The notes under the pieces were generated by a model. The model worked only from the letters and a program-made list of their open reading frames with translations, was not told the DNA's origin and ran no database searches. Of a stretch of DNA of 64,000 nucleotides, positions 6,943-35,530 are shown piece after piece. Made by a program: the position numbers and the translations under genes. The first letter of the stretch is position 1, and the number at the start of each line of letters is the position of its first letter. Source of the stretch: Dimorphilus gyrociliatus (Eukaryota > Animalia > Annelida); NCBI GenBank assembly GCA_904063045.1, contig CAJFCJ010000019.1, positions 620,001 to 684,000 on the forward strand, given 5' to 3'.

Positions 6943-8529
6943 TTATTTGGGAGGAGGGAAATAGTATTATAAAATTAATAAATAAAATGTTTATACAGAC
7001 GGTAGATGGCATTCCGTATCCAATTTTAGTAAAAGAATATTTTTTTACTATCGTAGTAAGATTTAAAGACGGATCTTGTATAAACGTGAGAAAATGACGA
7101 TGACTTGTCGAAAATAAAAGTATTTAGCGTGATGATTACAAGCAATGTCGAAAAGATTCCGGAGGGAGAGAATGAAAATGGAAAAATAGATATTCCTGCA
7201 CGAAACGCTTCTATTATGCGGTGACGCTTATAAAGAGTAGCCAGTTGATTATGTGACTATGCATAACTGTGGTTGCCCAATAATTGCTACTGTCAATTTC
7301 GAATCGGTTTCGGTGAATGAGGCTCAACGATGCGACGCCGTAGGTTATAGACCGTATAGGCCTATATTTATATAAGACTATATTTTACGTATTGACTCTG
7401 ACTTGACAAAAGCAAACAGACTTATGACTCTATATATATATAGGCACGCCCCTGTAAATATTTCATAAACTGGGATAAAAGACGATTCGCGCCATAAGTA
7501 ATTTTTACGAGCAAAACAGTCAAATCTGCTGGATGAAATAATTAGACTAATAATTCACGGTAAGAACGCTATATTAGCCAACTGCACTCATTTGGAGAAC
7601 ATTTATTAATGTTACTACATACGATAAGTGTAAATACATATGGTATATAGGATTAAAAAACAACTGTATACAAACTGCATGTATAAATACATTGAAGGAG
7701 AATTTGGGCGCGAACAGAATACAAAAAGTAGAGCAAACTACTGAGAAAACTGGAGGCGAAAGAGTTTTTACACTGATTATGTTTATACAGAGCAGTACAG
7801 CAAAGTTTTGCGGGGCTTGCCGATTTTATAAAACTAGCGCCTATATATACGAGTCTTGTTTTTCTTCAATTTAGACGCCGCCGCAACGAGCGCATATATA
7901 AACGTGGCAGGGCGTCGTTGTCAAAATCGAATTATCTCGCGCTTGACTATAACGAGCTTCGCAGACGCTTCAAGCGTTTCTTTCTTCGCTTGACCTTTTG
8001 ACTGATGGCTGAGTCTTATCGAATATTTTCGGCTATTAGAGAAAAGTAGGGATAGGCTTTTCGTACATTTATTGATAAGTTCAGGTATAAAACATGAAAA
8101 ATATTAGAAAATAGAGCTTTTTAACTGATGAATAAATCGTTTAACTTTCGTTTTTAATACGCCTATATGCACTCATTAAATTCGGCGCGTCTTTTCCAAT
8201 AAAGGGCTGCTGTAGCGCCCCCTGTACCCGTGCCAATAGCTGCACTTTTTGCTATTGCAGACCCGATTGCTGTATAGCGGCGGCCGTATAGCAGATGAAC
8301 GAGATAGCAAGAGCAGGAGTACAACATTTTCTAGCCAGTCTTGCGGCGCATTGATTCGTCATTTATCTTTTTCCATATCTTCCGCTCTGGAGCACTGAAC
8401 CGTCTCGAATTAATCTTCTTCGACGGCGTTTAATTTCGAGGGAGACGCCATCTAACGGACGTTTCTAATATCGGAATCGATCTATAACCAAAGTGGCCCG
8501 GACAGAGCGGCGATGCGACAACGATCAGC

Positions 8530-9762
8530 ATGTATAACAATTCGAAGCCGGAAGTTGTTCCGAAAAAAGTCGTGTCTTTTCCAGTGCCCGATTTATTACC
8601 GGAACGCTCATATGCAACCTACGGCAAGGACTCAGATTTTCCAGCACCACCACCTACCCAACTGGTCATGAATAAAGAAACAGACAGGGATAGCGGAATT
8701 TACGTACAGTTTAGTCCGCCAACAGCGGCAGCGCCAGCCCAAAATACCTCCCAAGTAGATCCTGCCGCCCTGGTGGAGGAGAAAATCCGAAGTGGCCTTC
8801 ACCCTTGCCATCCAGAATTGTTGACCATATTCCTGCAAAATCTACATATGTCAAACTATGTGTCTTTATTCGTTCAGGCAGGCTATGATTTGGCCACCGT
8901 CTCGAAAATGACGCCGGCCGATCTAAGCGCTATCGGAATTCGAAATCCGAGTCACCGGAAGAGGCTTAAGACGGAGATCTCCCGACTTAAGATTCCCGAA
9001 TTACTACCCAATTTTTATCCACCGTCTCTAAGCGTTCTACTGCAACTTCTCTGCCTACCGCATCTGGAACCAGTTCTCAATTCTCACGGCTATAAAACAA
9101 TTTCTAGCTTACTCGAGTTAACTTGGGAAGACCTCGAGGAGGTCGGAGTTACAAAGTTAGGCGAACAGAAGAAGTTAGTAGTGGCCGTCGACAAACTGCG
9201 CAAACTCGATTCCTCGCCTCATTCGACACACAATCAAGCGAATTATCCACCCTCTCCGGACGTCGTTGCTATTCAAGTATCGGAAGCGCCATCTGGTGTC
9301 GAATCAAGCCACAATCGAATTGGTTATTCCGGTTCGTTAACTAGGCGTTCAGTATCGACATTTACGAGCTCGGACGCTTTGATAACTCGCCAAAAAACAC
9401 CTCCTCCTCCGCCCCCCAAAAGGGTAAACAGCGTTAAGGCGTCGGCTTCCCCGTCACTAAAACCAAAGCCAATTTATCCACCAAAGCCGCCATCTCCTGC
9501 TCCAAAGCCGAAAATGACACCTCGAGTCGTTAGCTCATCAACCGATGTTCCTCGGCTAGAGGCGCATAACGCTGCCGTAACAAGGAGGCAGGCATCAGAC
9601 GACAGTACAAGTTCGTCTAATGAGGGATTACATTTCGCCAATGAAGACGTGGGTACAATTAGACAGAAATCGTCTAATCCAAATGTTTTGAATGAACTAG
9701 ATACAATGCTTCAAGGTCTTACAGATGAACTGGATGCAATTTTGAAAAAACAATTCAAGTAG
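8530..9762 (+). CDS. Caskin-like tandem SAM domain scaffold protein, intronless CDS
   Basis: Two SAM domains (FLQNLHMSNYVSLFVQAGYDL...IGIRNPSHRKRL; LLQLLCLPHLEPVLNSHGY...VGVTKLGEQKKL), a proline-rich region, and C-terminal LNELDTMLQGLTDELDAIL resembling the Caskin C-terminal helix. In-frame TAA at 8485 upstream. Confidence 0.8.
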   Translation: MYNNSKPEVVPKKVVSFPVPDLLPERSYATYGKDSDFPAPPPTQLVMNKETDRDSGIYVQFSPPTAAAPAQNTSQVDPAALVEEKIRSGLHPCHPELLTIFLQNLHMSNYVSLFVQAGYDLATVSKMTPADLSAIGIRNPSHRKRLKTEISRLKIPELLPNFYPPSLSVLLQLLCLPHLEPVLNSHGYKTISSLLELTWEDLEEVGVTKLGEQKKLVVAVDKLRKLDSSPHSTHNQANYPPSPDVVAIQVSEAPSGVESSHNRIGYSGSLTRRSVSTFTSSDALITRQKTPPPPPPKRVNSVKASASPSLKPKPIYPPKPPSPAPKPKMTPRVVSSSTDVPRLEAHNAAVTRRQASDDSTSSSNEGLHFANEDVGTIRQKSSNPNVLNELDTMLQGLTDELDAILKKQFK

Positions 9763-9889
9763 TTTTCTTTATAGATGGTGCTTAATTATCTATACAAAGT
9801 GTTTTACTCGCTAATCCTTATATAAATAAAAAAAACCTATGCAAGCTCTGTTTTCGTTATAAAAGAAACAAATTCAACTGTTGTGATTT

Positions 9890-11389
9890 TTAAACTACAC
9901 CTTTCTTCCTGGGGTTCTTCTTAGGTCTATGCACCTCTGCTGAGGTTATTAGAACACGTTTTTCAGAATCTGATTTTTTTACCATGACTGTTCTTCCACC
10001 AGAGCTAGTAAACTCAATAGAAGGTTTAAAATCTTCTTTTAATAAAGAAGCTAATTTGGAATGTTTCTTTTCCTGTTCAATTTTCAAAGAGATTTGTTTT
10101 TTTATAGGTTCTGGCGATGGAATAATAATTTCTTCAGTATCCGAATCACTATCAATTAATACTTCTACTTTCTCTTCAATTTTATTATTCGTATCATCAG
10201 TCTTAGCTTCATTTGATGTAATTTGTCTGTTTTCATCCTCAATCGTGCAAACACTATTAACAACACCCCTACTTTTAGTTGATTGATTGATTTCTTTACT
10301 TGTTTTTGTCGCAAAAATAGGTGGGTTCATTTCGTGTGGTTCAACTTTTTGTTCAGGTAGAAATCTTTCCATATACGTTTTAGCCAACTCGAAATCAAAG
10401 TCAAAACTTTCAGCAAGAAAACCAAATGTAAAATATCTAAATCTTGTTGAAAAGATTAGAAATAAGTAGAACTTTATGTTTGAATTGATACATTGGAACA
10501 TTATGTAGCAAATTTCCAAGTTTTGAAAGTAGTTTGAGTAATTTAGTATGTTATCTTCAAAAAAGCAATTGATATGAAATTTTATTGGAATATTCTCAGT
10601 CCAGACAGCAATTCTGTAACAAAGGAATGGAATCTCTGTAATTAATCTTAAAATTGAGACAATTGCTTGTAGTTTAACACTTCTTCCGTCTTTAAATTCC
10701 TCGGAATTTACTGAAATTAACGAACGGATTGACATAATTTTCACTTGTATAAATAGAGCCGAATTAACGGCTAGAATTAGCAACCATGGTATTAAAACAA
10801 AGATTATAACATAAGCGTATTTGTCGTAATATTGATAGCTCTGCTGATTATGTAGGTCAGTCGTGCATATAACTTCTCTTGATGAACCATCCTTAAAATC
10901 CATAACAACCACCCGAAATTGAAAATAATTTACAAAATGGAATACAACAACTACACCACTCACGGCGAATGCTAATTTAACGGCTTTCTTTACAGTGCTG
11001 TATCTGACGGACTTTTCAGCGTGTAATCCGAACATGTAACCGTCAACAGTTAGGGTGATTATTAAAGCAGACATAACAACTTGCAGACTTTGAGTTATAG
11101 GGAAGGCGTGGGCATAAAAGGTTGGAGATAGTGGAGATCGAGAACTAACTTGAGAATACTCCGAGGAGAGTAGCATTAACATTAGGATTGTATAGACAAT
11201 ATCGGCTAAACTCAAGAAAGTCATATAAACCGATGGAGGACTCTTCATCCGTTTTTGATTAAAGATGATTATCAACATCGAATTGCCTAATAGCCCAAAC
11301 GCAGCCAAACTTGGCATTAAAATACCAAATGCGATATGTTTAGAAGATCCAATTTCTTCTATCTCTCGAGTTTTTTCCGCTAAAGACAT
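9890..11389 (-). CDS. Rhodopsin-class peptide GPCR, FMRFamide/myosuppressin-receptor-like, intronless CDS
   Basis: Seven hydrophobic segments: GLLGN (TM1), LSLAD (TM2), TVDGY in place of DRY, IPWL (TM5), NSNIKFYLF (TM7). Long charged C-tail. First ATG at 11389. Confidence 0.8.
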   Translation of the reverse strand: MSLAEKTREIEEIGSSKHIAFGILMPSLAAFGLLGNSMLIIIFNQKRMKSPPSVYMTFLSLADIVYTILMLMLLSSEYSQVSSRSPLSPTFYAHAFPITQSLQVVMSALIITLTVDGYMFGLHAEKSVRYSTVKKAVKLAFAVSGVVVVFHFVNYFQFRVVVMDFKDGSSREVICTTDLHNQQSYQYYDKYAYVIIFVLIPWLLILAVNSALFIQVKIMSIRSLISVNSEEFKDGRSVKLQAIVSILRLITEIPFLCYRIAVWTENIPIKFHINCFFEDNILNYSNYFQNLEICYIMFQCINSNIKFYLFLIFSTRFRYFTFGFLAESFDFDFELAKTYMERFLPEQKVEPHEMNPPIFATKTSKEINQSTKSRGVVNSVCTIEDENRQITSNEAKTDDTNNKIEEKVEVLIDSDSDTEEIIIPSPEPIKKQISLKIEQEKKHSKLASLLKEDFKPSIEFTSSGGRTVMVKKSDSEKRVLITSAEVHRPKKNPRKKGVV

Positions 11390-24549: not shown

Positions 24550-25008
24550 GTGGGCAATAACCTTTCTAAGAGTTACTTCAAGTCACCAATCCCACCAAAA
24601 ATCCGCCCACGGTTTAATTTACCAGCTCTGTAGCCTATTCGAGATGATGCTGGTAATTATATTTTTTAATTTAAACTCTATCAGAAAAGAGTCGTCTGCT
24701 GTGTAATTTGGTTGGTATCTAAGGTCAAATATGACTAAAAGCTCTCAAACTTGAACAAGGTTATTACAGGGTAAACTTGTTTGATAATGTTGGGTTTTTT
24801 ATCAGATTAGTATAAAATAAAGTATAAAAAATGTCTATAATATTACATTTGATCAAGAATTGCATACAAAACTAATTGAGCAAAAAGATCCAATGTTAAA
24901 AATCAACCAATAAGATTTGAGTTTTGGCCGGAAGGCGCCAAGTTGAGTGCATAAATATTCGATCTACAAAGCCATCAGGCCACTAACGTTTTCGTGAAAA
25001 ACAAAGAA

Positions 25009-27843
25009 ATGTCGAAGCCGCTCTTTTTGAACACCAATGGTGAATTGGAGAATAAAATTAAAGAGCTCAGCTTATTAAAGAGCCCCGAAAGATCAGCTAG
25101 AAAAGAAGTAAAATACCTTGGTGACGATGATGACCACTCTTCGAGAGCTCCTAGGTCAGCTTTTTCACCCTCACCTCGTATGGATGAACTACAACGTTTC
25201 GAGCACAAGCATCAAGTTGTAGCGGAGATGTCTGCAGCCTACAAAAATCTATTGGTTTCCATTGGTGAAGACCCAGGCCGTCAAGGTTTGCTTAAGACAC
25301 CGGACAGAGCAGCCAAAGCTTTCCTCTACTTTACTAGAGGTTACGACGAGAAGATATCAGGTGATTTCTTATATTAAATTCGATTTTGGACTTTTGCCCT
25401 TGTAAGATAAGACAACAGTAACTTCGTAAATACATACTATTGTGTTTTTACTGAACGAAACATGAAAAGTCAGATGCCAATAAGCTGATCAATGTCGTTC
25501 GCATATTTGTCCCGTCTTTTCATTTCCGTCTTTTAGCTAGTAACGCCCACGCTGTGCATAATTGCCACGAAATTGGTAGGTTATATTTAGAAACACGCCG
25601 ATAGGCGGTCAGTGATCGCCCTAATTTTTATTCGACAAATTGTATAAGAATTGAGGCTGACATGGTAACCCGTTGATCACATTTCTTTCACTTTTTATTC
25701 CCCATAAGAGGAAAAGTTGGGAAAAAGTCATGAAATAGTTACAAGTTATAAATAATAACATTTAAAGGGAATTTACAAGAGGAGAAATAAAAAGATAATA
25801 GGAGTATTACTTCTTTTTTTTTCTAATATAAAAAGAATAAAAGATTTCTCAGATTTCTAGTTCATGTATAATAATATTTAATAATTTATCAATGCTCTAA
25901 TTACATTGAAATCCCTGTAATCTTTTATTGAATAATTATGAATGAAGAGTAAAAAACAAGAATATGTTGTTAAAACCGTAGGACTAATTAGACATATGAA
26001 AACTGTGTTTATAGTTTCGTTGGGAGACGAAATGATAGAACCTTACAGTTAATTAAAAGTTGAAAATTTATATTTATTGTTAAAAAGGAAAATTAAAAAG
26101 GTATATATAATGTTAATAAAGTAGCAGGTGCCCTTATGTACTCTTCTTTATGAGTTTCTTCTTTAATATTTCACTTTTTATTCTCTCACTCTCTCTCTAT
26201 CTCTCTCTTTCTATCTTATTATTCTCTAATCGAGTGTTTCTTATTTCATTAAAACTGAATATATATATGTCTTATAGATGTTCTAAACGATGCGATTTTC
26301 GACGAGGATACAGACGAAATGGTTATTGTTAAGAATATTGAAATGTTCTCAATGTGCGAGCATCATCTTGTTCCTTTTATTGGAAAGGTATTTGATCTTT
26401 CGATACATATTTTTCTTTTATTATTACGTACAGCGCCAATATTTATTTAATACTTTTTCTGTATTTAGGTATCAATTGGTTACTTGCCCAATAAAAGAGT
26501 AATAGGCTTAAGTAAATTAGCCAGGTATTTATAATTTCCTATCTTGATTTTCTTTCTTATTTTTGAGAATGAATAAAATTGTTTAATTAATTTAATTATA
26601 CATTGCAGAATTGTGGAGGTGTACAGTAGAAGATTGCAAGGTAAAAATGGAACTTACTTTTATTTGTTTATAATTAATAGATTAAAAAAAAAATTGAGAA
26701 AAGCAAAAAGAATAGAAAAGAGAAAATAACTCATTTTTTTTTAAGTTAAAGGGAAAACTAGTAGGAAACTAATTTCGATATAATCTAAAGAAAAATCTAG
26801 ACTTAAATAATAATAAGGGAAAATACAAATTCCGTTTTAAAATAACTGGAGTTTTTGTACGAGAACGCCGCATATATATCGACGCAAGCCCCAATCGAAT
26901 ATTGCAATAGCATGTTAATGAGGCAGCAATATTCAGCAATACAGTTTCTGTTTGCATGTTTGGACATTTTGGTCGCTATTTCAGTAATACAACATTTTGC
27001 CCGTATGTCGAAATATAAATATAACAATATAGTTGGTATTCTATCAGTTCAAGAACGGCTTTCAAAACAAATTGCTGAAGCGGTTGTTACTGCTGTTCAA
27101 CCATTCGGTGTTGCTGTCAACATTGAGGCAACGTAAGTTCCCAATGCACGTGTAAATTCTCAGAAAAGAGATGATGTTTGCATAGTGTGCATAACAGTAT
27201 ATTAGTTACTTTTTTATATTTTTCTGTAATTATTTATGAACGAATTAGGCCTGTAGCTTTTCAATGTTTTTTTTTATTATTATTGTTATTTTACTGCATT
27301 TTTATCCTTTCTCAATCAAGCTATTCCTTATTTTATTGTTTACCCTTCAATTTTTTTCGCAGTACAAGAACGTCTCACTAAACAAATAGCACTAGCGATT
27401 TTCGAAGCAATAAGTCCTGCAGGTGTCGCTGTTGTTTGCGAAGCTTCGTGAGTGTACTAAAAAAAAGCATATTTCTTTTTTTACATATATTCCTTTTGTT
27501 TCCTTATATATGTATATGTAGATATAGAATTAGCATGCACAGACTATCTTTCATATTAATTTTATAGAGTATGCAGTATGTTTATCCATATACTGCACTT
27601 ATAGATTAGCAATTGAAGAGTTTAACAGGACATTAAAAAGCTTAAATGCATCATGCATTGATAATTTGTACAGCTTTATATTCAATATTCAATTGCCTAT
27701 TTTCCTCTCCAATTAGGCATATGTGCATGGTGATGAGAGGCGTGCAGAAAATTAATAGTAGGACCATAACGAGCACAATGTTAGGCGTCTTCAGGGAAGA
27801 TCCCAAGACTAGAGAGGAATTTTTAACCTTGATTAAAGAATAA
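25009..27843 (+). CDS. GCH1: GTP cyclohydrolase 1; exons 25009-25360, 26278-26387, 26469-26524, 26609-26640, [27048-27132 OR 27363-27447], 27717-27843
   Basis: [65 protein letters not shown]. Internal exon sizes 110/56/32/85/127 match the vertebrate GCH1 structure as I recall it. Confidence 0.98.
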
Positions 27844-28471
27844 AACTCTTTGTTTGGTGATGGAATTCTTAAATACTCATATTCACGGAAAAGGGTATTT
27901 TATCCACATTTAAGGAAACAATTAAGTCCTGTTCAAATGGATATTAATGGAACAATTAAGGAACATTCATTTAATCTTATATTTTGTTTGAAAAAAAAAG
28001 TTTTTGCAGGCAAATCATGTAAATGTTGTTTACTAATTTTTCTGTAAATTTTAAGAAAAACCTGGGTAAAATTCAAATGAAAAATAGAATGAAGATGAAA
28101 AATGGCGAAAATGGGAATAATTTATTAAGTATAAATTAAATTTTCAACCACGACTAACCACTTGAAGAGAATAACAAGAAGCAATAATGAAATCAAGTTT
28201 ATCCTAATTTTCCTCTAATGATCATTTAATGTTGCCCTGCAAAAAATATATGTAGTAAGGTATTGTTTGTTTTGTTCTTGTCTTCCAAAAAATTATATAT
28301 GACAATTATGCTGATATTGTAATTTTACTTTGTATGAATAATCAATACACAATTGGTGCAGATTAATGAAAAATTATACCTATATATGCAACTGAGGAAC
28401 GAGAGAGTGGGAGAGACCTTCCGTTATTAATTCTATGAATAATTAATTTCCTTAAAGTTACGAGTAAAACA

Positions 28472-28479
28472 TGACGTCA
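28472..28479. promoter_or_regulatory. Perfect CRE (TGACGTCA) about 390 nt upstream of the micro-exon gene ATG
   Basis: Sequence match, plus a YY1-like AAAATGGCG near 28100. An 8-mer match alone is weak evidence. Confidence 0.3.
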
Positions 28480-28864
28480 ATTGTACTTTTTGAAAAGGTA
28501 TAGAAATAGTTATTAGCCCTAATATATTACTTATTAACGACTGTTTAAATTTATGAAAACAATATAAATAAATTCTGTTTATTATTGTGAATGGGAGAAG
28601 ATAAAACAACCTTATTCTGTCACTTTTCTTCCTTCTTCTCCTTCACCTTGTCCTTCTTCTTTTCCTTTTCCATCTTCTTTCCATCTTCTTTCCCTCCTTC
28701 AACTTGTTTCTCATTCTTTCTGTTCTCTTTATAATTCAGTATCGCTCTTGAAAATAGAAGCTAGCCTTTTGGGAGAGGCAAGTAGGAAGAGCAAATTAAA
28801 GGAAATTTCCAACTGTAAATCACTTTAATGAAATAATTGGAAACTTATAATCAATCTTCGTTTA

Positions 28865-30257
28865 ATGATAAATGAACAAATGAGTGATAATTCAGAACTT
28901 TCGGATATTATAAATATTGAAACTGTAAGATATTTCAAAATAAAACAATTAAAATCATACTATTGACCTTTTATATAAAAATAAAAAGCCAAGACAAGAT
29001 CCTCCTTATGCACTAGTAAGTTTTATAAGGATTCTTTTCTAAGACTTTATAAGACTTTATGTCAAATTTAATAATCTATTTTAATTATAAAATATAACCA
29101 TTTACAGAGGACAAGAACATCAATTGGAATTCCATTGAAAAATTCAGTAAGTTACAAGACAAGAATAAAACTAGTATTATAAATAATACGTAAATGTTAA
29201 TTAACTTTTAAACTTAATTATTAATTGACACATTCTAATAGATAAGCCTTTTTTAATTACATTTGCTAAATGTCTTAATTCTTAAAAGAAAAGTAGAGAA
29301 TTTGTTGTTTGCCGCTTCTCATTCGTGGGTAGAGGTTACTTTCTGTATATATATATATATATATATATATGCAGTATATTGTTTAATTAATTCTGAAAAT
29401 ACGTATAATATATTAATGTTCACTTTCTATCTTCTTAAGGGAAAAACTTCAACAAAAGACACTCAGGTCAGGGAACTTTTATAGTTTGTTTCCTTCTATA
29501 TTTTATGTATAGTGTGAATGCAGTTGTTCTCTAAACTAAGCTACTATTTTATCTTTCTCTTTCTTATCTATATTGTTAGCGACGACGTTCTGTGATGATT
29601 AGGAAAAGAGTTGAAGGTGAAGGAGCGAAATCACCCACTTTTGTATACATTAAAATAGCTTATTACCTATAATGATCATTTAGTAATGAGAAAATTTTTT
29701 TCTTCCTCCCTATAAAAGGTTGAACCAGCTAAGAGACGAGTAATCAATACTTTATTAATTATTTCATTTTATTTACATTTTTCTTTTTAAGTTGTTTTGA
29801 TCGACTTTTGGCTCAATATTTTTTTACTATTAAAAAAATTATATACTCTTATAGTTTTGTTCTAAATTTAATTCTTTTTCTATTCTTCTCTCTATCTATA
29901 TCTGTTTTAAACTTATTTCCCTTCTACTACAGCGTCGAACCTCTCTTAACCAATTTTCGGATGATGAAAATGTAATTTCTTAATTTTAATCATATTTTTA
30001 TAAATTCTTGTTCTCTTTGATTTTGATAATCTATAATTTTTTTCTTCTTTGCAGAGCCTCTCGCAGTCACTTCAAGTAAAGAGACTAACTTCTGTTAGTG
30101 TAAGGGAAAATAATTGAGGTTCTTAGAAAATTATACTAAACGTAATTCTGCTTTCTCTCCCTTTATCGTCAATAACAGGCACATGATCAAGTTGATAATA
30201 GGGCGGCCTTTGAATCGTCAACTGATCAAATGATAGACAATGTAAAGTATATATATG

Positions 30258-30288
<31 letters not shown>

Positions 30289-31033
30289 GACGCGCATACA
30301 AATAAATTTTAGTTCTTTTGTTCTAATATTATTGCTAACTTATTCCCTTAGGTAACAAATAAAAAGAAATCGCCTCTTCATAGGGTGAACTTTTATTATT
30401 AAAAAACTAAAGAAAGACGTTTTTTACTAACTAATTTTTGTTCTTCGATAGCTGAAGGAAGTCTTGAATTTTTCACCTAGTGAACCGATTAAATCGCTCG
30501 TAAGTAATTAGTAATCGATTTCGAGATATAGCTCACCCAGTTGAATTTAATAGGCTGACAATAATTCAGGAACGAGTAACAATAAAAAAACAATAGGTGG
30601 GAAACAAGACTACGCAACGCCACCATCAAATAGAAGCGTTAAATGGTTAGACTTGAATAAATATTAATAAAAATTTCTCTATAAACACTTGATTAAAAGA
30701 CTACTGCAAAGTGTTGATCAGAGATAGAAAGAATGAATTCAGTGATTATCTCTGGAGAGAGAAGTGGAGGAATATTTTATGTTTTTTTTTTCATCCTTTG
30801 AAATTAAAAGTTAATAAAAAAGAGTGTTTTACAGGATCAAGCGGGTTGACAGTGAATTATATAAAATAAATTTAGTTCGTTTCACATATTAGTTTATTGT
30901 GTTTTTTTTCACTTTTTATGATTAAATTATATTTAATGTAAACAGGGACTTTGGGATAGATATAAAGTAGCAAATAGACAATATAATGCCTTACTAGCCC
31001 AGAGAGTAAATATTTTAACACGCCATTTTTTTC

Positions 31034-31064
<31 letters not shown>

Positions 31065-32795
31065 CTAGTAGATGTGCTATGAAAATGATTTAATAATAAA
31101 ATTTTTCATTAGCCATGTGATAGATGTAGACTGAAGAAAAAATACGAGGTTAGTATAACAAATATTATATTTCATGACATATTATGACTGTATAAGGGTA
31201 AACAATATTATTTTTATACTATAGGAGGAAGGGATGATGGTTGATGTAAGAATTAGAAAAAAAAATAACAAATAAGCCTCGTTTATGTAAAAAAAAAAAC
31301 TACTCCTTTATTGTCTATCATTATTTTTCCTTCCAACCTCACGCCTCTTTCTTTGCTTTACCCCATCTCTCTTTGCTTGTTTTGTCTCTTTCTCTCGCTC
31401 TGTATATGTTCCTTTGTAACATTATATAAATATATATATCTATATATATATATGATATATATGTACATTTAATTTTATCTCTTTCTCATACATACCGTCA
31501 ATCCTGTTTTCTTACTACAAATCGCAGAATTTAGAATTGGAAATTGACGTTAGTATACTCCGTTTGTTTCGTTTTAAATTGATGTAGATGTTTTGAATAA
31601 ATAGCTTCTTTTTTTCTTTTCTCCAACCCTACAATATATACATATATATATTATAATTAAATAATACAGAAACTAAAGGAAGCGGAAGAAGTACGTTTAC
31701 AAATTATATTTCTTTTTTTTTGTGTTTATTAAGCTATTACAATAAAAAAAAGATTCTACAAAGCTGCTTTTTAATGGGAATGATGCTAATTTGTTTTTAT
31801 TATATTAAAGTAGAAAAAACATAGAAAATTGAATTAATTTCGTTCATATAGTCTAAGATAAATTAGTATAAGTAATTTATATATACTTGGCTAGTATTCT
31901 TTCGTCTTATATATTTTATTTTATTTATTTTAAAGGCTGAAGAAACTAGGAAAGAAAGTCTTCATGTTGAAATATACGTGAGCTAGTTGAATTTTGATAA
32001 ATCGTTAAAATAGACTGTGAAACCAATAGCAATTGTCACGAAGAAAAAGTGTTTTAAAAAGGAGGGTAATTAATAAGAAAAAGGTTAAATATTTCAAATA
32101 AGTCTCTTTTTTATTTCTTGTTTGTAAATGAAAGAACAGTATAGTTAAGATAAAGGTTTAGTAAATTGCTCTATTTCCGTAATTTACTCTTAAAACTAAG
32201 TAATTGTAATAGAATTTTAGAAGGTAATGAATTAGGAGATGATCCTCTCAAACTAAACTAACTATAAGTACGTTTTGTTTATTACATAGGAGATGGATAA
32301 TCAGGAAAATGAGATATGCGGAATGAATAAATCTTGTATGGAATGTGAAGAAGTTATAAGTCGATACGAAAAGGTAAGTTTCCTTAATCTTAAAGATGAC
32401 AAAAAGTGACATTTTATGAAGAGATGTTTCTTTTTAAAGGATATAAAAGAAGCTCAAAAGGTAATCATTGTCTAAGTATTTCTTATGACTTATACTTTTA
32501 TTATGGATAAAGATTAAGGGGATTTTTTTATCTCTTTATTTTGCCTTTTTCACATTTCTTTCTTATACTTAGAGAATGAATGATGAGCTTATTTATGCAA
32601 ATGAGGTGAGTTAGGGTAAACGAAGGGTGAATTTTTATAATAAAAAAGATGTTTATAAAAATAGAAACATTTGTACTAATATTTTCCTTTAATATCTCTT
32701 TTTTTATACTAAATGAAAATAAGGAAAAGAGTCGAATAAAGAAAGAGTTATTAGCAGTCCTACATGACAGTTTGAATCAACTTGGCCGAAGATAA
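28865..32795 (+). CDS. Cryptic ~23-exon micro-exon gene encoding a ~301-aa protein with a basic, disordered N-half and a coiled-coil C-half; no recognised family
   Basis: Exons: 28865-28924, 29108-29146, 29440-29466, 29580-29642, 29719-29739, 29933-29971, 30055-30075, 30179-30241, 30352-30384, 30452-30499, 30554-30596, 30835-30851, 30946-31005, 31113-31148, 31225-31245, 31528-31548, 31670-31690, 31936-31977, 32135-32155, 32290-32373, 32440-32460, 32573-32605, 32724-32795. Each internal exon is flanked by AG and GT, and they join into a stop-free 906-nt frame. Confidence 0.7.
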
Positions 32796-33679
32796 TGACC
32801 TCTTTCCTTAACCTTTTAATTCTAAATCTCTTTCCTGGAAATGCGCAAATTTTAGAAAAGATAGACCGAACAAAATAGGGATAAAAGAGATTTAAATCGT
32901 TTTAAAGTATTAATATATTTCTTTTTAACACAAATGTATAATACTTAGTATTTACATACAAATATATATTATATACATATAAAAACGGATTAAAATTGTG
33001 TGAATAATTCTGTCTCGCCATTTCTTCTTTCTTTCTACCTATCTATTTATAAGTATTCGTGCAATGATGTATTTATACCTTTCATGTTCGTTTTTATTGC
33101 CTCTGATATCTTACTTTAAGTACTATGCTTCTTCTCTAATCTATTCATATTTCAAAATTTGATTAGATTTATTTAAAACCTATAATGGCTCAGTGTTTTT
33201 TCTTGTTTTTTTTTGTCAATTATTCTATTTGAAATAACGTGATATATATTTATATACAATGGGAAAAAACAAAAAAAAGCTCTTACTAATATTTAGATTT
33301 ATTTAGGCTTAATTTTCTTGTTTTTTAATATTTGTATAAACTCTTGATTTATTTTGGATAATTTGTTAATATCATGTTGAGTTTATTATATGTTCTTTAT
33401 GAGTGAAATTTTTAAAAAGGATGAATTAATTAAACTTTTGTTAATGATGTATTTGTAAGTTGTAATCGAACACTGTTCGAAAAACGTAGTGTCCATATGA
33501 GCATACTCTCACGTGAATATTGATAAATATTGGTCAAGACATATATTGGAATCTTTGAAGTATAGAGTGTAAATATTACAATTAACAGCATCGATAAAAC
33601 AACATTGATTTATGTTGTAAGTGCATTTTTAACAACTTACGATTCTTACACTTGAAGTAGTGTTTATTTTAAAACAAAA

Positions 33680-35530
33680 ATGAGCGATAATGAAAGACAT
33701 AAAAAATGTGAAGTGTGCAATGAGAAACAATCTAAATATACTTGTCCAAAGTGTTCTGTTCGTACATGCTCATTAGAATGCGTAAAACAGCATAAAAAAG
33801 CTGTAGACTGTGATGGAAAAAGAGATAAAACTGCATACTTATCCCTGGATAAATTTAACGATAACGTTCTTTACAGCGGTAGGTTTTCTTTTTATCATGA
33901 TACATAATTTTATAAGGGTAAGACATTAGCCTTCATATTTTCACATAATATTTTCAGATTATTACTTTCTGGAAGACGTTAATAGAGCTGTAGAAAATTC
34001 TGAAAGGGGCCCAAGGCACTCGAATCGCCTAAAGCTTCCGGAAAAAGTATTTATCTATCGCGCTGTCAAGCCACTGTTTTAATAATTTCATTTCTACATT
34101 AACAGCGTGAAAGACTGTGCAAAAATGCGAAAAAGATAGGAGTCACTTTAGAATTTTTACCAAAGGGTATGGCAAAAAATAGAAGAAACAAGTCTTTTTA
34201 TAACAACGAGTAATATCATTTTTGTTCTCTATTTCTCTTTATATTCCATCATCTAGTGATTTATTATAATTATTTATCCAAGATGAAAAAAAATTCCATT
34301 ACTTGTAGATACTAAAATATTTTATACCAGAGGAATGGGATAACTTAATTTCATCGTACTTTTCTTAATTATACACCATTTTTGAATCATTATTTAATTA
34401 TGGTAATTAGGAGATAACTTTATAGTTTATCATAGTATCCCGTATCCCCGGGAAAAAGAAATGTTTTATCTTTCACCATTCCTTTTTCTATCTAAAGCTT
34501 CCTTCAATAGTGTAATTCATTTCTTATAACAGACAAAAGCAAATAATATGGACGATTGAGTGGCGTCTGCCTGAGATATCCGTGAAATCAATTTGTGATG
34601 GGTAATTATATTTAGAGAATAATGTAGTGAATAAAATTATTAAAAAAAAAAAGAATTTTCTCTTTTTTTCTCTCTTCTTTCTTTTTCCATTCCTTATAAT
34701 CCGTACTGTATATTTTTAGATTTATGGGAGATACTAAACTCAAAGAAGCTTTTACTAATTTTACATCCGAAAGAAATCCCGTTATCAAACACAAAATAGA
34801 GGAATTAACAAACAAATCAGATTATAAGGGAATTTTTTTCGTCTTATTTAGAGCTGAAAAATCCAACGGAAACAGGTAAGGATCCAGTTAATAACCCTTT
34901 ATATTTATTGTGTACTTTCTATAAACGTTGATGACAAATGCTCGTCACTCTTGTTTCTAATCTCGAATGCTGGTATAACGAGACCAGCTGTGAATTACCC
35001 TGCGAGTGTTGTACAAGCTGAAGAAAATCTAATGCTACTAACCTTTTACTTGTTGTTACATACGTCTAAATAATTGTCAGTGTAACATGAATATAAAGGA
35101 AAACTGATGAAAAATTACTAAACCTTTTCGTTCCTTATTTTTCGTTTCCAGAAAATAATTGCAATTAATTTTTTATCTTTAAAATGCTATTCTATTACCC
35201 GCTTGACTAAAACACTTTCTATTTATTATAACAGATATTATTCGTTAGATCTGAATAAGAGTATATGTGAGAATTTGCGAGGAAAAACAGTAATCGAATA
35301 TCCCTGTTTTATCTTGGTTACCAGCAAATCACTCGACGAATATAAATTATTAAATAGAATATCCGTTGCAGGTAAACGAAAAAATAACCTTATATTTATT
35401 GTAAAAACACCGAAAGACTGCTTTCTTTTTGTATCTTATTTTAGACGTTCTGAAAGACGAAAAAGAAGAAGGTGAAGTAACGGAAAGCGAAGAAGAATTG
35501 GGCTTTGTTATTTCCGACGAAGATTTATAA
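33680..35530 (+). CDS. ZNHIT6: Box C/D snoRNA biogenesis protein 1 (zinc finger HIT domain 6), 7 exons
   Basis: zf-HIT CEVCNEKQSKYTCPKCSVRTCSLECVKQHK..CDGKRDKT, then DYYFLEDV, LEFLPKGMAKNRRNKS, IIWTIEW, YSLDLNKSICENLRGKTVIEYP. Acidic last exon ends at 35530. Confidence 0.93.

Follow-up and report, generated by a model that had tools for sequence, protein, structure and literature searches.

The window analysed here, a stretch of 64,000 nucleotides of Dimorphilus gyrociliatus DNA, on balance probably holds a real, expressed, protein-coding micro-exon gene. An exact protein look-up assigned the window to contig CAJFCJ010000019.1 of assembly GCA_904063045.1, which PMC10212961 lists under this species. 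Judged from its sequence, the 135-residue product of the downstream half is well supported as a predicted coiled coil. In the RNA contigs of run X1, its exons of 21n nt (whole multiples of 21) are joined constitutively up to an 84-nt exon, and close to the C-terminus the RNA can include or omit an in-frame cassette of 21 + 33 nt (18 residues). For transcript evidence, spliced contigs from this single public run were used, 17 of which aligned to the window, each at an identity of at least 99%. As assembled contigs, these drop rare isoforms and carry no usable quantities, and their joints show presence, not absence; all joint counts given below rest on the 15 joints listed for X1. Thirteen of the 15 are plus-strand GT..AG joints, and when contig cut offsets were applied to the alignment of X1 contigs with the window sequence, all introns proved to be GT..AG. 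Four joints (31245>31528, 31548>31670, 31977>32030, and 32083>32290) have an identical depth of 28.5 and were therefore taken as belonging to a single contig. In the contig linking the 21-, 21-, 21-, 42-, 54-, and 84-nt exons, all of these are joined, in order.

The RNA-supported open reading frame runs on the plus strand from ATG 30643 to a stop at 32795 and encodes 135 aa. Its 135 codons remain open over 11 exons, an outcome with a chance of about 2e-6 at the exon base composition; on this ground a non-coding transcript was ruled out. The GC content of the exons of this half is 0.33, compared with 0.24 for the introns. The frame opens in a 92-nt exon (30554–30645; joints 30499>30554 and 30645>31113, with three-frame translation of the spliced RNA), which lies in the RNA between a 48-nt exon (30452–30499) and a 36-nt exon and whose length is not a multiple of three. 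The 3′ end of this exon reads TAA ATG, the ATG being the one at 30643. The 36-nt exon, PCDRCRLKKKYE (31113–31148; joints 30645>31113 and 31148>31225), marks the beginning of the heptad pattern and includes a CxxC motif. Three 21-nt exons follow, each with its first residue at heptad position c: EEGMMVD (31225–31245; joints 31148>31225 and 31245>31528), NLELEID (31528–31548; joints 31245>31528 and 31548>31670), and KLKEAEE (31670–31690; joint 31548>31670). For the last of these, a GTACGT donor was read from the sequence at 31691, and the joint to 31936 was deduced from the following joint, one side of which has 41 letters. The 42-nt exon, AEETRKESLHVEIY, spans two heptads (31936–31977), also from position c; its 3′ border is given by the listed joint 31977>32030, and its 5′ border would follow from the 41 letters to the left of that joint plus one ambiguous G.

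The next exon, QLSRRKSVLKRRVINKKK, is 54 nt long and contains a basic cluster (32030–32083; joints 31977>32030 and 32083>32290). Since it runs from heptad position c to f, the exon borders downstream of it are shifted by four heptad positions. The 84-nt exon (32290–32373; joints 32083>32290, 32373>32440, and 32373>32724) has the longest coding part, with four heptads and 28 aa; it starts at position g and contains a C-x5-C-x2-C motif. The optional 54-nt cassette is formed by a 21-nt exon, DIKEAQK (32440–32460; joints 32373>32440 and 32460>32573), and a 33-nt exon, RMNDELIYANE, of 11 residues (32573–32605; joints 32460>32573 and 32605>32724). The last coding exon (32724–32795), assigned from the contig at 32722–33000 and its translation, holds 23 codons plus TAA, and the 3′ UTR of the X1 contig reaches at least 33000. 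The RNA-confirmed internal exons of this half measure 21–84 nt, every one a multiple of three. The preliminary description had given seven consecutive exons of 21, 21, 21, 42, 21, 84, and 21 nt. Six of these (21, 21, 21, 42, 84, and 21 nt) stand, in phase 0 and between GT..AG introns, whereas the fifth is 54 nt long; a 21-nt exon at this place would need the GTTTTA donor at 32051, which is used by none of the listed joints. The peptide V-D-N-L-E-L-E-I-D-K-L-K-E-A-E-E had been read correctly.

The 135-aa product was examined for heptad periodicity. Within a single register, 25 of 39 a and d positions carry hydrophobic residues, where 20,000 shuffles gave 17.3 ± 1.4 (p = 5e-5); this upholds the claim that the segment is heptad-patterned and shows the pattern to be significant and unbroken. 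Periodicity peaks were seen at 7/2 (p = 0.017) and 7/3 (p = 0.001), and no peak was seen at 3.6 in this ORF. The a row (RYVIEKIKVMICIIMAIVQ) is mostly I/V and the d row (MLELLELLLKQMCYAEEEDR) mostly L; 45% of the 135 residues are D/E/K/R, with 1 Pro and 3 Gly. A continuous register covers residues ~8 to ~105 and is followed by a 4-position register change in the last ~30 residues. These sequence statistics, with I/V at a and L at d as the signature, suggest a parallel two-stranded coiled coil of about 100 residues, which at 0.148 nm per residue would form a rod about 15 nm long.

Exon lengths were compared by a binomial test with an expectation of 1/7 for 21n exons among exons of 3n length. 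Lengths of 21n are found for six of the nine internal exons in the coiled-coil half confirmed by RNA (P = 4.8e-4) and for 9 of 19 internal exons in the whole model (P = 5.8e-4). An earlier count of 11 in 23 exons is replaced by these figures. The rod is made of ten phase-0 exons, and because six of them are exact 21-nt multiples, intron positions recur at fixed heptad positions. As to whether borders fall at one constant position, five successive exons have their start at c and three at g, and the exons of 36, 54, and 33 nt depart from the rule. One exon to one heptad cannot be kept as a gene-wide rule, the 54- and 33-nt rod exons being no heptad multiples. Three further 21n exons (63, 21, and 63 nt, among 11 model exons) lie in the non-heptad upstream half, so that the enrichment cannot be shown to be confined to the coiled coil. 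We read the 21n pattern as a probable constraint on, or by-product of, the way in which a heptad-periodic sequence arose and was maintained: exons gained, lost, or fused within a coiled coil would be tolerated mainly if frame and register were preserved, and the 21n lengths would then be no regulated device for setting length.

Upstream of the 92-nt exon, eleven exons (45, 27, 39, 27, 63, 21, 39, 45, 63, 33, and 48 nt) were modelled on the plus strand between 28880 and 30499, with RNA joints for part of them. All are in phase 0 and of 3n length, and they would encode a Ser/Arg/Lys-rich, non-heptad region; their GC content is 0.38, compared with 0.22 for the introns. RNA supports the borders at 29971, 30055, 30384, 30452, and 30499 only, and X1 gave no cover for the exons 5′ of 29933. 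Antisense spliced RNA was also observed in X1: a minus-strand exon at 28611–28812 is bounded by CT..AC joints (28432>28611 and 28812>30432), and its intron at 28813–30431, with minus-strand sites GTTAGT...TTTACAG, spans the first ten model exons. The initial model had further included a 60-nt phase-0 exon on the plus strand, GLWDRYKVANRQYNALLAQR (30946–31005), with a GC content of 0.37 against 0.14 in its flanks. X1 depth is 0 in the bin covering it (30864–31017), and the RNA uses the 92-nt exon at 30554–30645 instead. As the length of the latter is not 3n, the upstream half and the coiled-coil ORF are in different frames in the observed RNA, and the coiled-coil protein would start at ATG 30643, barring an unseen form that skips the 92-nt exon and fuses both halves. 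The full spliced protein would have 135 or about 284–304 residues.

That the locus comprises two translation units, an upstream disordered basic protein ending in the 36-nt exon (31113–31148) and a separate 135-aa coiled-coil product from ATG 30643, is a somewhat doubtful reading. It would account for joints 30499>30554 and 30645>31113, through which the 92-nt exon causes a frameshift that ends the upstream ORF at a TGA eight codons into the 36-nt exon, and for the in-frame TAA that precedes the ATG opening the downstream ORF; the frame-keeping 60-nt exon, moreover, is without RNA cover. Against this, a transcript spliced straight from 30499 to 31113, or one including the 60-nt exon, would keep a single frame and may exist, two joints lying beyond the 15 listed, and phase 0 of all exons on either side is what a single gene would be expected to have. 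The context of ATG 30643 is also weak (T at −3), and a 135-aa protein of this sequence is absent from a set of 5.8 billion proteins. An ordinary phase-0 micro-exon gene, with an excess of 21n exons that is a coincidence spotted post hoc, was considered unlikely. Such a coincidence would fit the occurrence of 21n exons in the non-heptad upstream half, the two rod exons that are not 21n, and the look-elsewhere effect of a scan over the whole genome (1317 windows). It fits poorly with a P of ~5e-4 for six of nine exons and with the coincidence of the 21, 21, 21, 42 run with an independently significant heptad pattern, and genes this rich in micro-exons are few, so that only a modest correction for multiple looks is called for.

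The preliminary description had further proposed a ruler, in which the 21n exons are regulated cassettes and splicing tunes the rod in graded steps of ~1 nm, one heptad shorter for each skip. The underlying arithmetic was confirmed: removal of each 21n exon preserves the frame and leaves the best global register unchanged, register 3 being kept on loss of any 21-, 42-, or 84-nt exon with 0.58–0.66 of a/d positions hydrophobic. Exon skipping also does happen in the gene, and introns next to the micro-exons are longer (median 118 nt) than the genome median of 66 nt (PMC7854359), which leaves room for regulatory elements. In the 15 listed joints, however, a 21n exon is never left out on its own, and the exons follow one another in order. 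The sole listed skip, by joint 32373>32724, removes 21 + 33 = 54 nt, or 18 residues, which is two heptads plus four residues and no heptad multiple; no other alternative joint is among those listed for the X1 contigs. Depth at this skipping joint was 11.5, compared with 16.6 at the inclusion joints, in contigs that give presence rather than amount. The 50 nt ahead of each of the four 21-nt exons contain no UGC (TGC) motif, and no binding partner or structure is known that would require a spacing to be measured. A ruler is therefore very unlikely. A collagen-like origin, in which tandem copies arose from one original 21-nt heptad exon and were later fused by intron loss into the 42- and 84-nt exons, was likewise judged improbable. 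A single unit divides the lengths 21, 42, and 84 nt (and 63 nt upstream) evenly, phase 0 throughout would permit such growth, and the fibrillar collagen gene with its 54-bp unit is a precedent (PMC4450265). Yet when the exon-plus-intron units were compared by repeat and tandem-repeat searches, only (TA)n and low-complexity tracts matched, and the heptad peptides are alike in their a/d pattern only. This leaves recent exon duplication unsupported, and a recent tandem duplication of exon-intron units was rejected. An ancient duplication predicts orthologues, and a limited search with an 81-aa piece of the rod found none, no homologue being present among the 45–142-aa proteins of the 5.8-billion set.

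Searches for known families were carried out with the same 81-aa rod piece, for which no PDB match was found. Two Pfam candidates fell below their cut-offs: Churchill, at 15.7 bits against 25, was treated as cysteine-pattern noise, and Leu_zip, at 13.5 bits against 28.2, as coiled-coil noise. The Geminin family, suggested by a weak motif resemblance, was rejected, as an 80-aa piece over the motif gave no Pfam match at E values up to 10 and the coiled-coil piece gave none either. A snoRNA or miRNA host gene as the cause of the longer introns was also rejected, an Rfam scan of 28000–33600 having returned sub-threshold TA-repeat matches only.

Several described systems resemble the gene in part. 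In the titin PEVK region and in nebulin, one exon corresponds to one repeat, exons measure 75–105 nt, and extensive regulated in-frame skipping gives filament length isoforms; here the exons are of 21 nt and the only skip is a 54-nt cassette at the rod end. Bilaterian neural micro-exons (3–27 nt) are isolated, tissue-regulated cassettes that depend on SRRM4/eMIC and have a UGC close to the 3′ splice site. The size of the four 21-nt exons is within this range, and they preserve the frame, but micro-exons make up most of the D. gyrociliatus gene and are joined constitutively in the X1 contigs, and the SRRM4 type was ruled out by the lack of the upstream UGC motif. Fibrillar collagen exons are in phase 0 and are whole multiples of a structural repeat, with a 54-bp unit, which keeps their borders at one position of the repeat (PMC4450265). 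The present gene, too, encodes what is predicted to be a rod-forming protein from phase-0 exons, in part repeat multiples with recurring border positions. It differs in that the repeat is the heptad of an alpha-helical coiled coil and not Gly-X-Y, the unit is 21 and not 54 nt, the rule is kept in six of nine exons, and the product is small (135 to ~300 aa) with no sign of secretion. Schistosome micro-exon genes (MEGs) encode secreted proteins of parasitic trematodes mostly in very short symmetric 3n exons (3–81 bp), with in-frame skipping and long introns of up to 5 kb (PMC10526429). Coding mostly in short symmetric exons is shared by the annelid gene, with the 92-nt exon as the exception and with partial RNA support for the upstream part. 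In contrast, D. gyrociliatus is free-living, the introns measure 52–467 nt, and the product is heptad-periodic. A hydrophobic signal core was also sought: the best 10-residue Kyte–Doolittle window in the first 40 residues reached 0.37 in the long model and 0.61 in the 135-aa ORF, and, no N-terminal hydrophobic segment being present, a schistosome-type MEG was ruled out.

Genes with repeat-matched exons, such as those for collagen, titin, and nebulin, are textbook cases of modular protein growth and of filament length set by splicing. No alpha-helical heptad counterpart of these genes was found in full-text searches of the literature. The gene packs ~20 introns into ~0.9 kb of coding sequence in a species known for intron loss, with a median intron of 66 nt (PMC7854359), and is thus an outlier in its own genome. 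That it represents a small class of D. gyrociliatus genes in which one micro-exon corresponds to one period, here of 7 residues, of an alpha-helical fibre, with in-frame skipping giving isoforms of different rod length or register, is quite improbable; if true, the class would constitute an undescribed, splicing-level tuning of coiled-coil geometry. Should exons of 21n (and 33n) nt cluster genome-wide in helical-repeat genes, D. gyrociliatus would offer a clean natural experiment in how protein periodicity constrains exon-intron structure.

The structure of the plus-strand micro-exon gene was drawn from two sources: a model read from sequence, in which very short phase-0 exons, each flanked by AG and GT, are chained from 28880 to 32795, and a single public RNA run (X1) stored as assembled contigs. 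All 17 of 17 X1 contigs aligned to the window at ≥99% identity with GT..AG joints, for which reason the run was treated as RNA; once cut offsets were applied, 13 of 13 plus-strand introns were canonical. X1 joints delimit 21-nt exons at 31225–31245, 31528–31548, 31670–31690 and 32440–32460, an 84-nt exon at 32290–32373, a 33-nt exon at 32573–32605 and a terminal exon starting at 32724, all on the plus strand. For the 42-nt exon (31936–31977, plus strand), a joint fixes the 3′ end; the 5′ end follows indirectly, from the 41 letters lying left of joint 31977>32030 and a further ambiguous G. Joints 31977>32030 and 32083>32290 bound a plus-strand exon at 32030–32083 that codes QLSRRKSVLKRRVINKKK. 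The preliminary description had listed seven exons of 21, 21, 21, 42, 21, 84 and 21 nt at 31225–32460; six of these lengths are backed by RNA, but the fifth exon measures 54 nt, and the series reads 21, 21, 21, 42, 54, 84 and 21 nt.

Within the introns, one RNA contig (31223–31377, depth 14.3) reads through the first 21-nt exon into the following 282-nt intron, an intron retention beside a micro-exon; the same intron carries a pyrimidine-rich tract of ∼120 nt (31290–31410). (TA)n microsatellites occur in five different introns (29346–29370, 30248–30288, 31039–31064, 31423–31462 and 31634–31655). No known small RNAs were found hosted in the introns, and Rfam matches to mir-297 and mir-1277 (29338–29381, 30247–30305) are sub-threshold and lie on (TA)n repeats.

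In the upstream half, RNA confirmed the borders 29971>30055, 30384>30452 and 30499>30554 among model exons 7–11, with zero X1 cover over the region of model exons 1–4 (28862–29477). GC content is 0.38 in model exons versus 0.22 in introns, and the resulting GC islands at every model exon would fit real exons; the same script returned 22 open AG..GT pseudo-exons in introns, and exons called by eye therefore need caution. A 92-nt exon (30554–30645) is used in the RNA. Because it shifts the frame, the upstream ORF terminates 8 codons into the 36-nt exon at 31113–31148, and the ATG of the downstream ORF is formed by the final three bases of the 92-nt exon, directly after an in-frame TAA. On this reading, the X1 transcripts would yield the coiled coil as a separate product of 135 aa. 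A fused protein of ∼284–304 aa would require joint 30499>31113 or a 60-nt phase-0 candidate exon (30946–31005; GC 0.37 versus 0.14 in its flanks, depth 0 in X1), neither of which appears among the X1 joints listed (15, with two more outside the listing). The 92- and 60-nt exons may be alternatives whose choice determines whether a single protein contains both the coiled coil and the upstream region. The 5′ half of the gene is also overlapped by a spliced antisense RNA (minus strand, 28432–30862) with CT..AC joints 28432>28611 and 28812>30432; its introns span 28433–28610 and 28813–30431, its exon at 28611–28812 holds just a short Lys/Arg-rich ORF, and unspliced contiguous cover at 30432–30862 may be its first exon.

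The ORF backed by RNA opens with the ATG at 30643 and closes with the TAA at 32795, and an open frame of 135 codons over 11 exons would arise by chance at ∼2e-6 at exon composition. As the preliminary description had it, the encoded segment is heptad-patterned: hydrophobic residues occupy 25 of the 39 a/d positions of a single global register, compared with 17.3 ± 1.4 for the best register of shuffles (20,000 shuffles; p = 5e-5). In a sliding 28-residue window, this register holds from the N terminus to about residue 93 and shifts 3 positions over the final ∼30 residues. Peaks in hydrophobic periodicity fall at 7/2 (p = 0.017) and 7/3 (p = 0.001), with none at 3.6. Position a is chiefly I/V, d is chiefly L, and e and g are largely charged; D/E/K/R make up 45% of the ORF, which has 1 Pro and 3 Gly. 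By established coiled-coil rules, such a pattern would fit a parallel dimer of ∼100 residues and ∼15 nm. A coiled coil is well supported by these sequence statistics, on which the call rests. The longest exon codes just 28 residues.

Exon lengths that are whole multiples of 21 nt (21n) make up six of the nine internal exons of this rod, where chance would give 1/7 of lengths divisible by three (P = 4.8e-4), and 9 of 19 in the whole model (P = 5.8e-4), in a test that is post hoc and made in a genome read whole. The count reported previously, 11 of 23 exons, is replaced by these figures, and one exon per heptad describes a tendency but no rule, given the 54- and 33-nt exons. Three 21n exons (63, 21 and 63 nt) belong to the upstream half, which lacks the heptad pattern. 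Chance is unlikely to have produced the 21n pattern, which falls together with a heptad signal that is significant in its own right. In the global register, the exons from 31225, 31528, 31670, 31936 and 32030 begin at position c, those from 32290, 32440 and 32573 at g and the last at d; this regularity and the length pattern are one and the same observation. Recent tandem duplication is not supported as the origin, the exon–intron units having no similarity beyond (TA)n tracts, and AG/G proto-splice insertion was not obvious in the 21-21-21-42 run, whose exons end GAT, GAC, GAA and TAC. The origin we favor is a structural filter on exon changes inside a heptad helix, whereby phase-0 gain, loss or fusion of exons would be tolerated chiefly if the register were kept. 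Such a filter would leave 21n lengths and a few compensated exceptions.

This arithmetic is shared with the proposal that splicing tunes rod length as a molecular ruler, but would operate across evolutionary time instead of through regulation. One heptad spans ∼1 nm, and computed deletion of any 21-, 42- or 84-nt exon does leave the best register as it was. Joints 31245>31528, 31548>31670, 31977>32030 and 32083>32290 have the same depth, 28.5, taken to mean that one contig joins those exons in order. Among the 15 joints listed for the X1 contigs, none skips a lone 21n exon. The sole alternative event among them, joint 32373>32724 (depth 11.5 versus 16.6 for the inclusion joints), omits the 21- and 33-nt exons together, which amounts to 54 nt, 18 residues or two heptads plus four. 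The global a/d fraction of the shortened form (0.647) is as good as that of the full form (0.641) because the best register of the last exon is itself offset by the same amount, and the retained fraction is a weak observation. Assembled contigs give neither proof of absence nor reliable proportions, and rare or stage-specific skipping may occur; in the data available, the ruler is without support.

An 81-aa piece of the rod had no match among proteins of 45–142 aa in a 5.8-billion protein set, no Pfam family above threshold and no sequence match in PDB. A suspected likeness to geminin was ruled out, an 80-aa upstream piece having no Pfam match. No signal-peptide-like segment was found. Basic clusters occur upstream (KRRRR) and in the rod (RRKSVLKRRVINKKK); together with RRxS-type motifs, they may point to an adaptor that is nuclear and phosphorylated.

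The window is AT-rich (27–37% GC) with dense genes, and the micro-exon gene is flanked by genes for GTP cyclohydrolase I (∼25000–27845, plus strand) and a zinc-finger HIT protein (33680–35530, plus strand). One exon of the former exists in two similar copies (27050–27134 and 27364–27449), which look like mutually exclusive alternatives. The sole GC-rich stretch (8001–10000, 44% GC) holds an intron-less gene at 8530–9762 that the public assembly annotates and whose 410-aa product (ORF 8530–9759) has SAM domains. An exact search with this ORF led to NCBI assembly GCA_904063045.1, contig CAJFCJ010000019.1 (618530–639762, flanks included), an assembly given as Dimorphilus gyrociliatus in PMC10212961. 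The genome of this miniature annelid spans 73.8 Mb; its introns have a median length of 66 nt and have undergone net loss, and trans-splicing was not evident (PMC7854359).

A full-text literature search found no precedent for heptad-sized exons in coiled-coil genes. SRRM4-type micro-exons have a UGC motif that is absent here. Titin PEVK and nebulin have an exon-per-repeat design that the micro-exon gene resembles. The same likeness extends to fibrillar collagen genes, built on a 54-bp unit (PMC4450265). Schistosome micro-exon genes (PMC10526429) also have short symmetric exons, but their secretion and long introns are absent from the Dimorphilus gene. Overall, the original observation stands up for the most part and is unlikely to be a product of chance.
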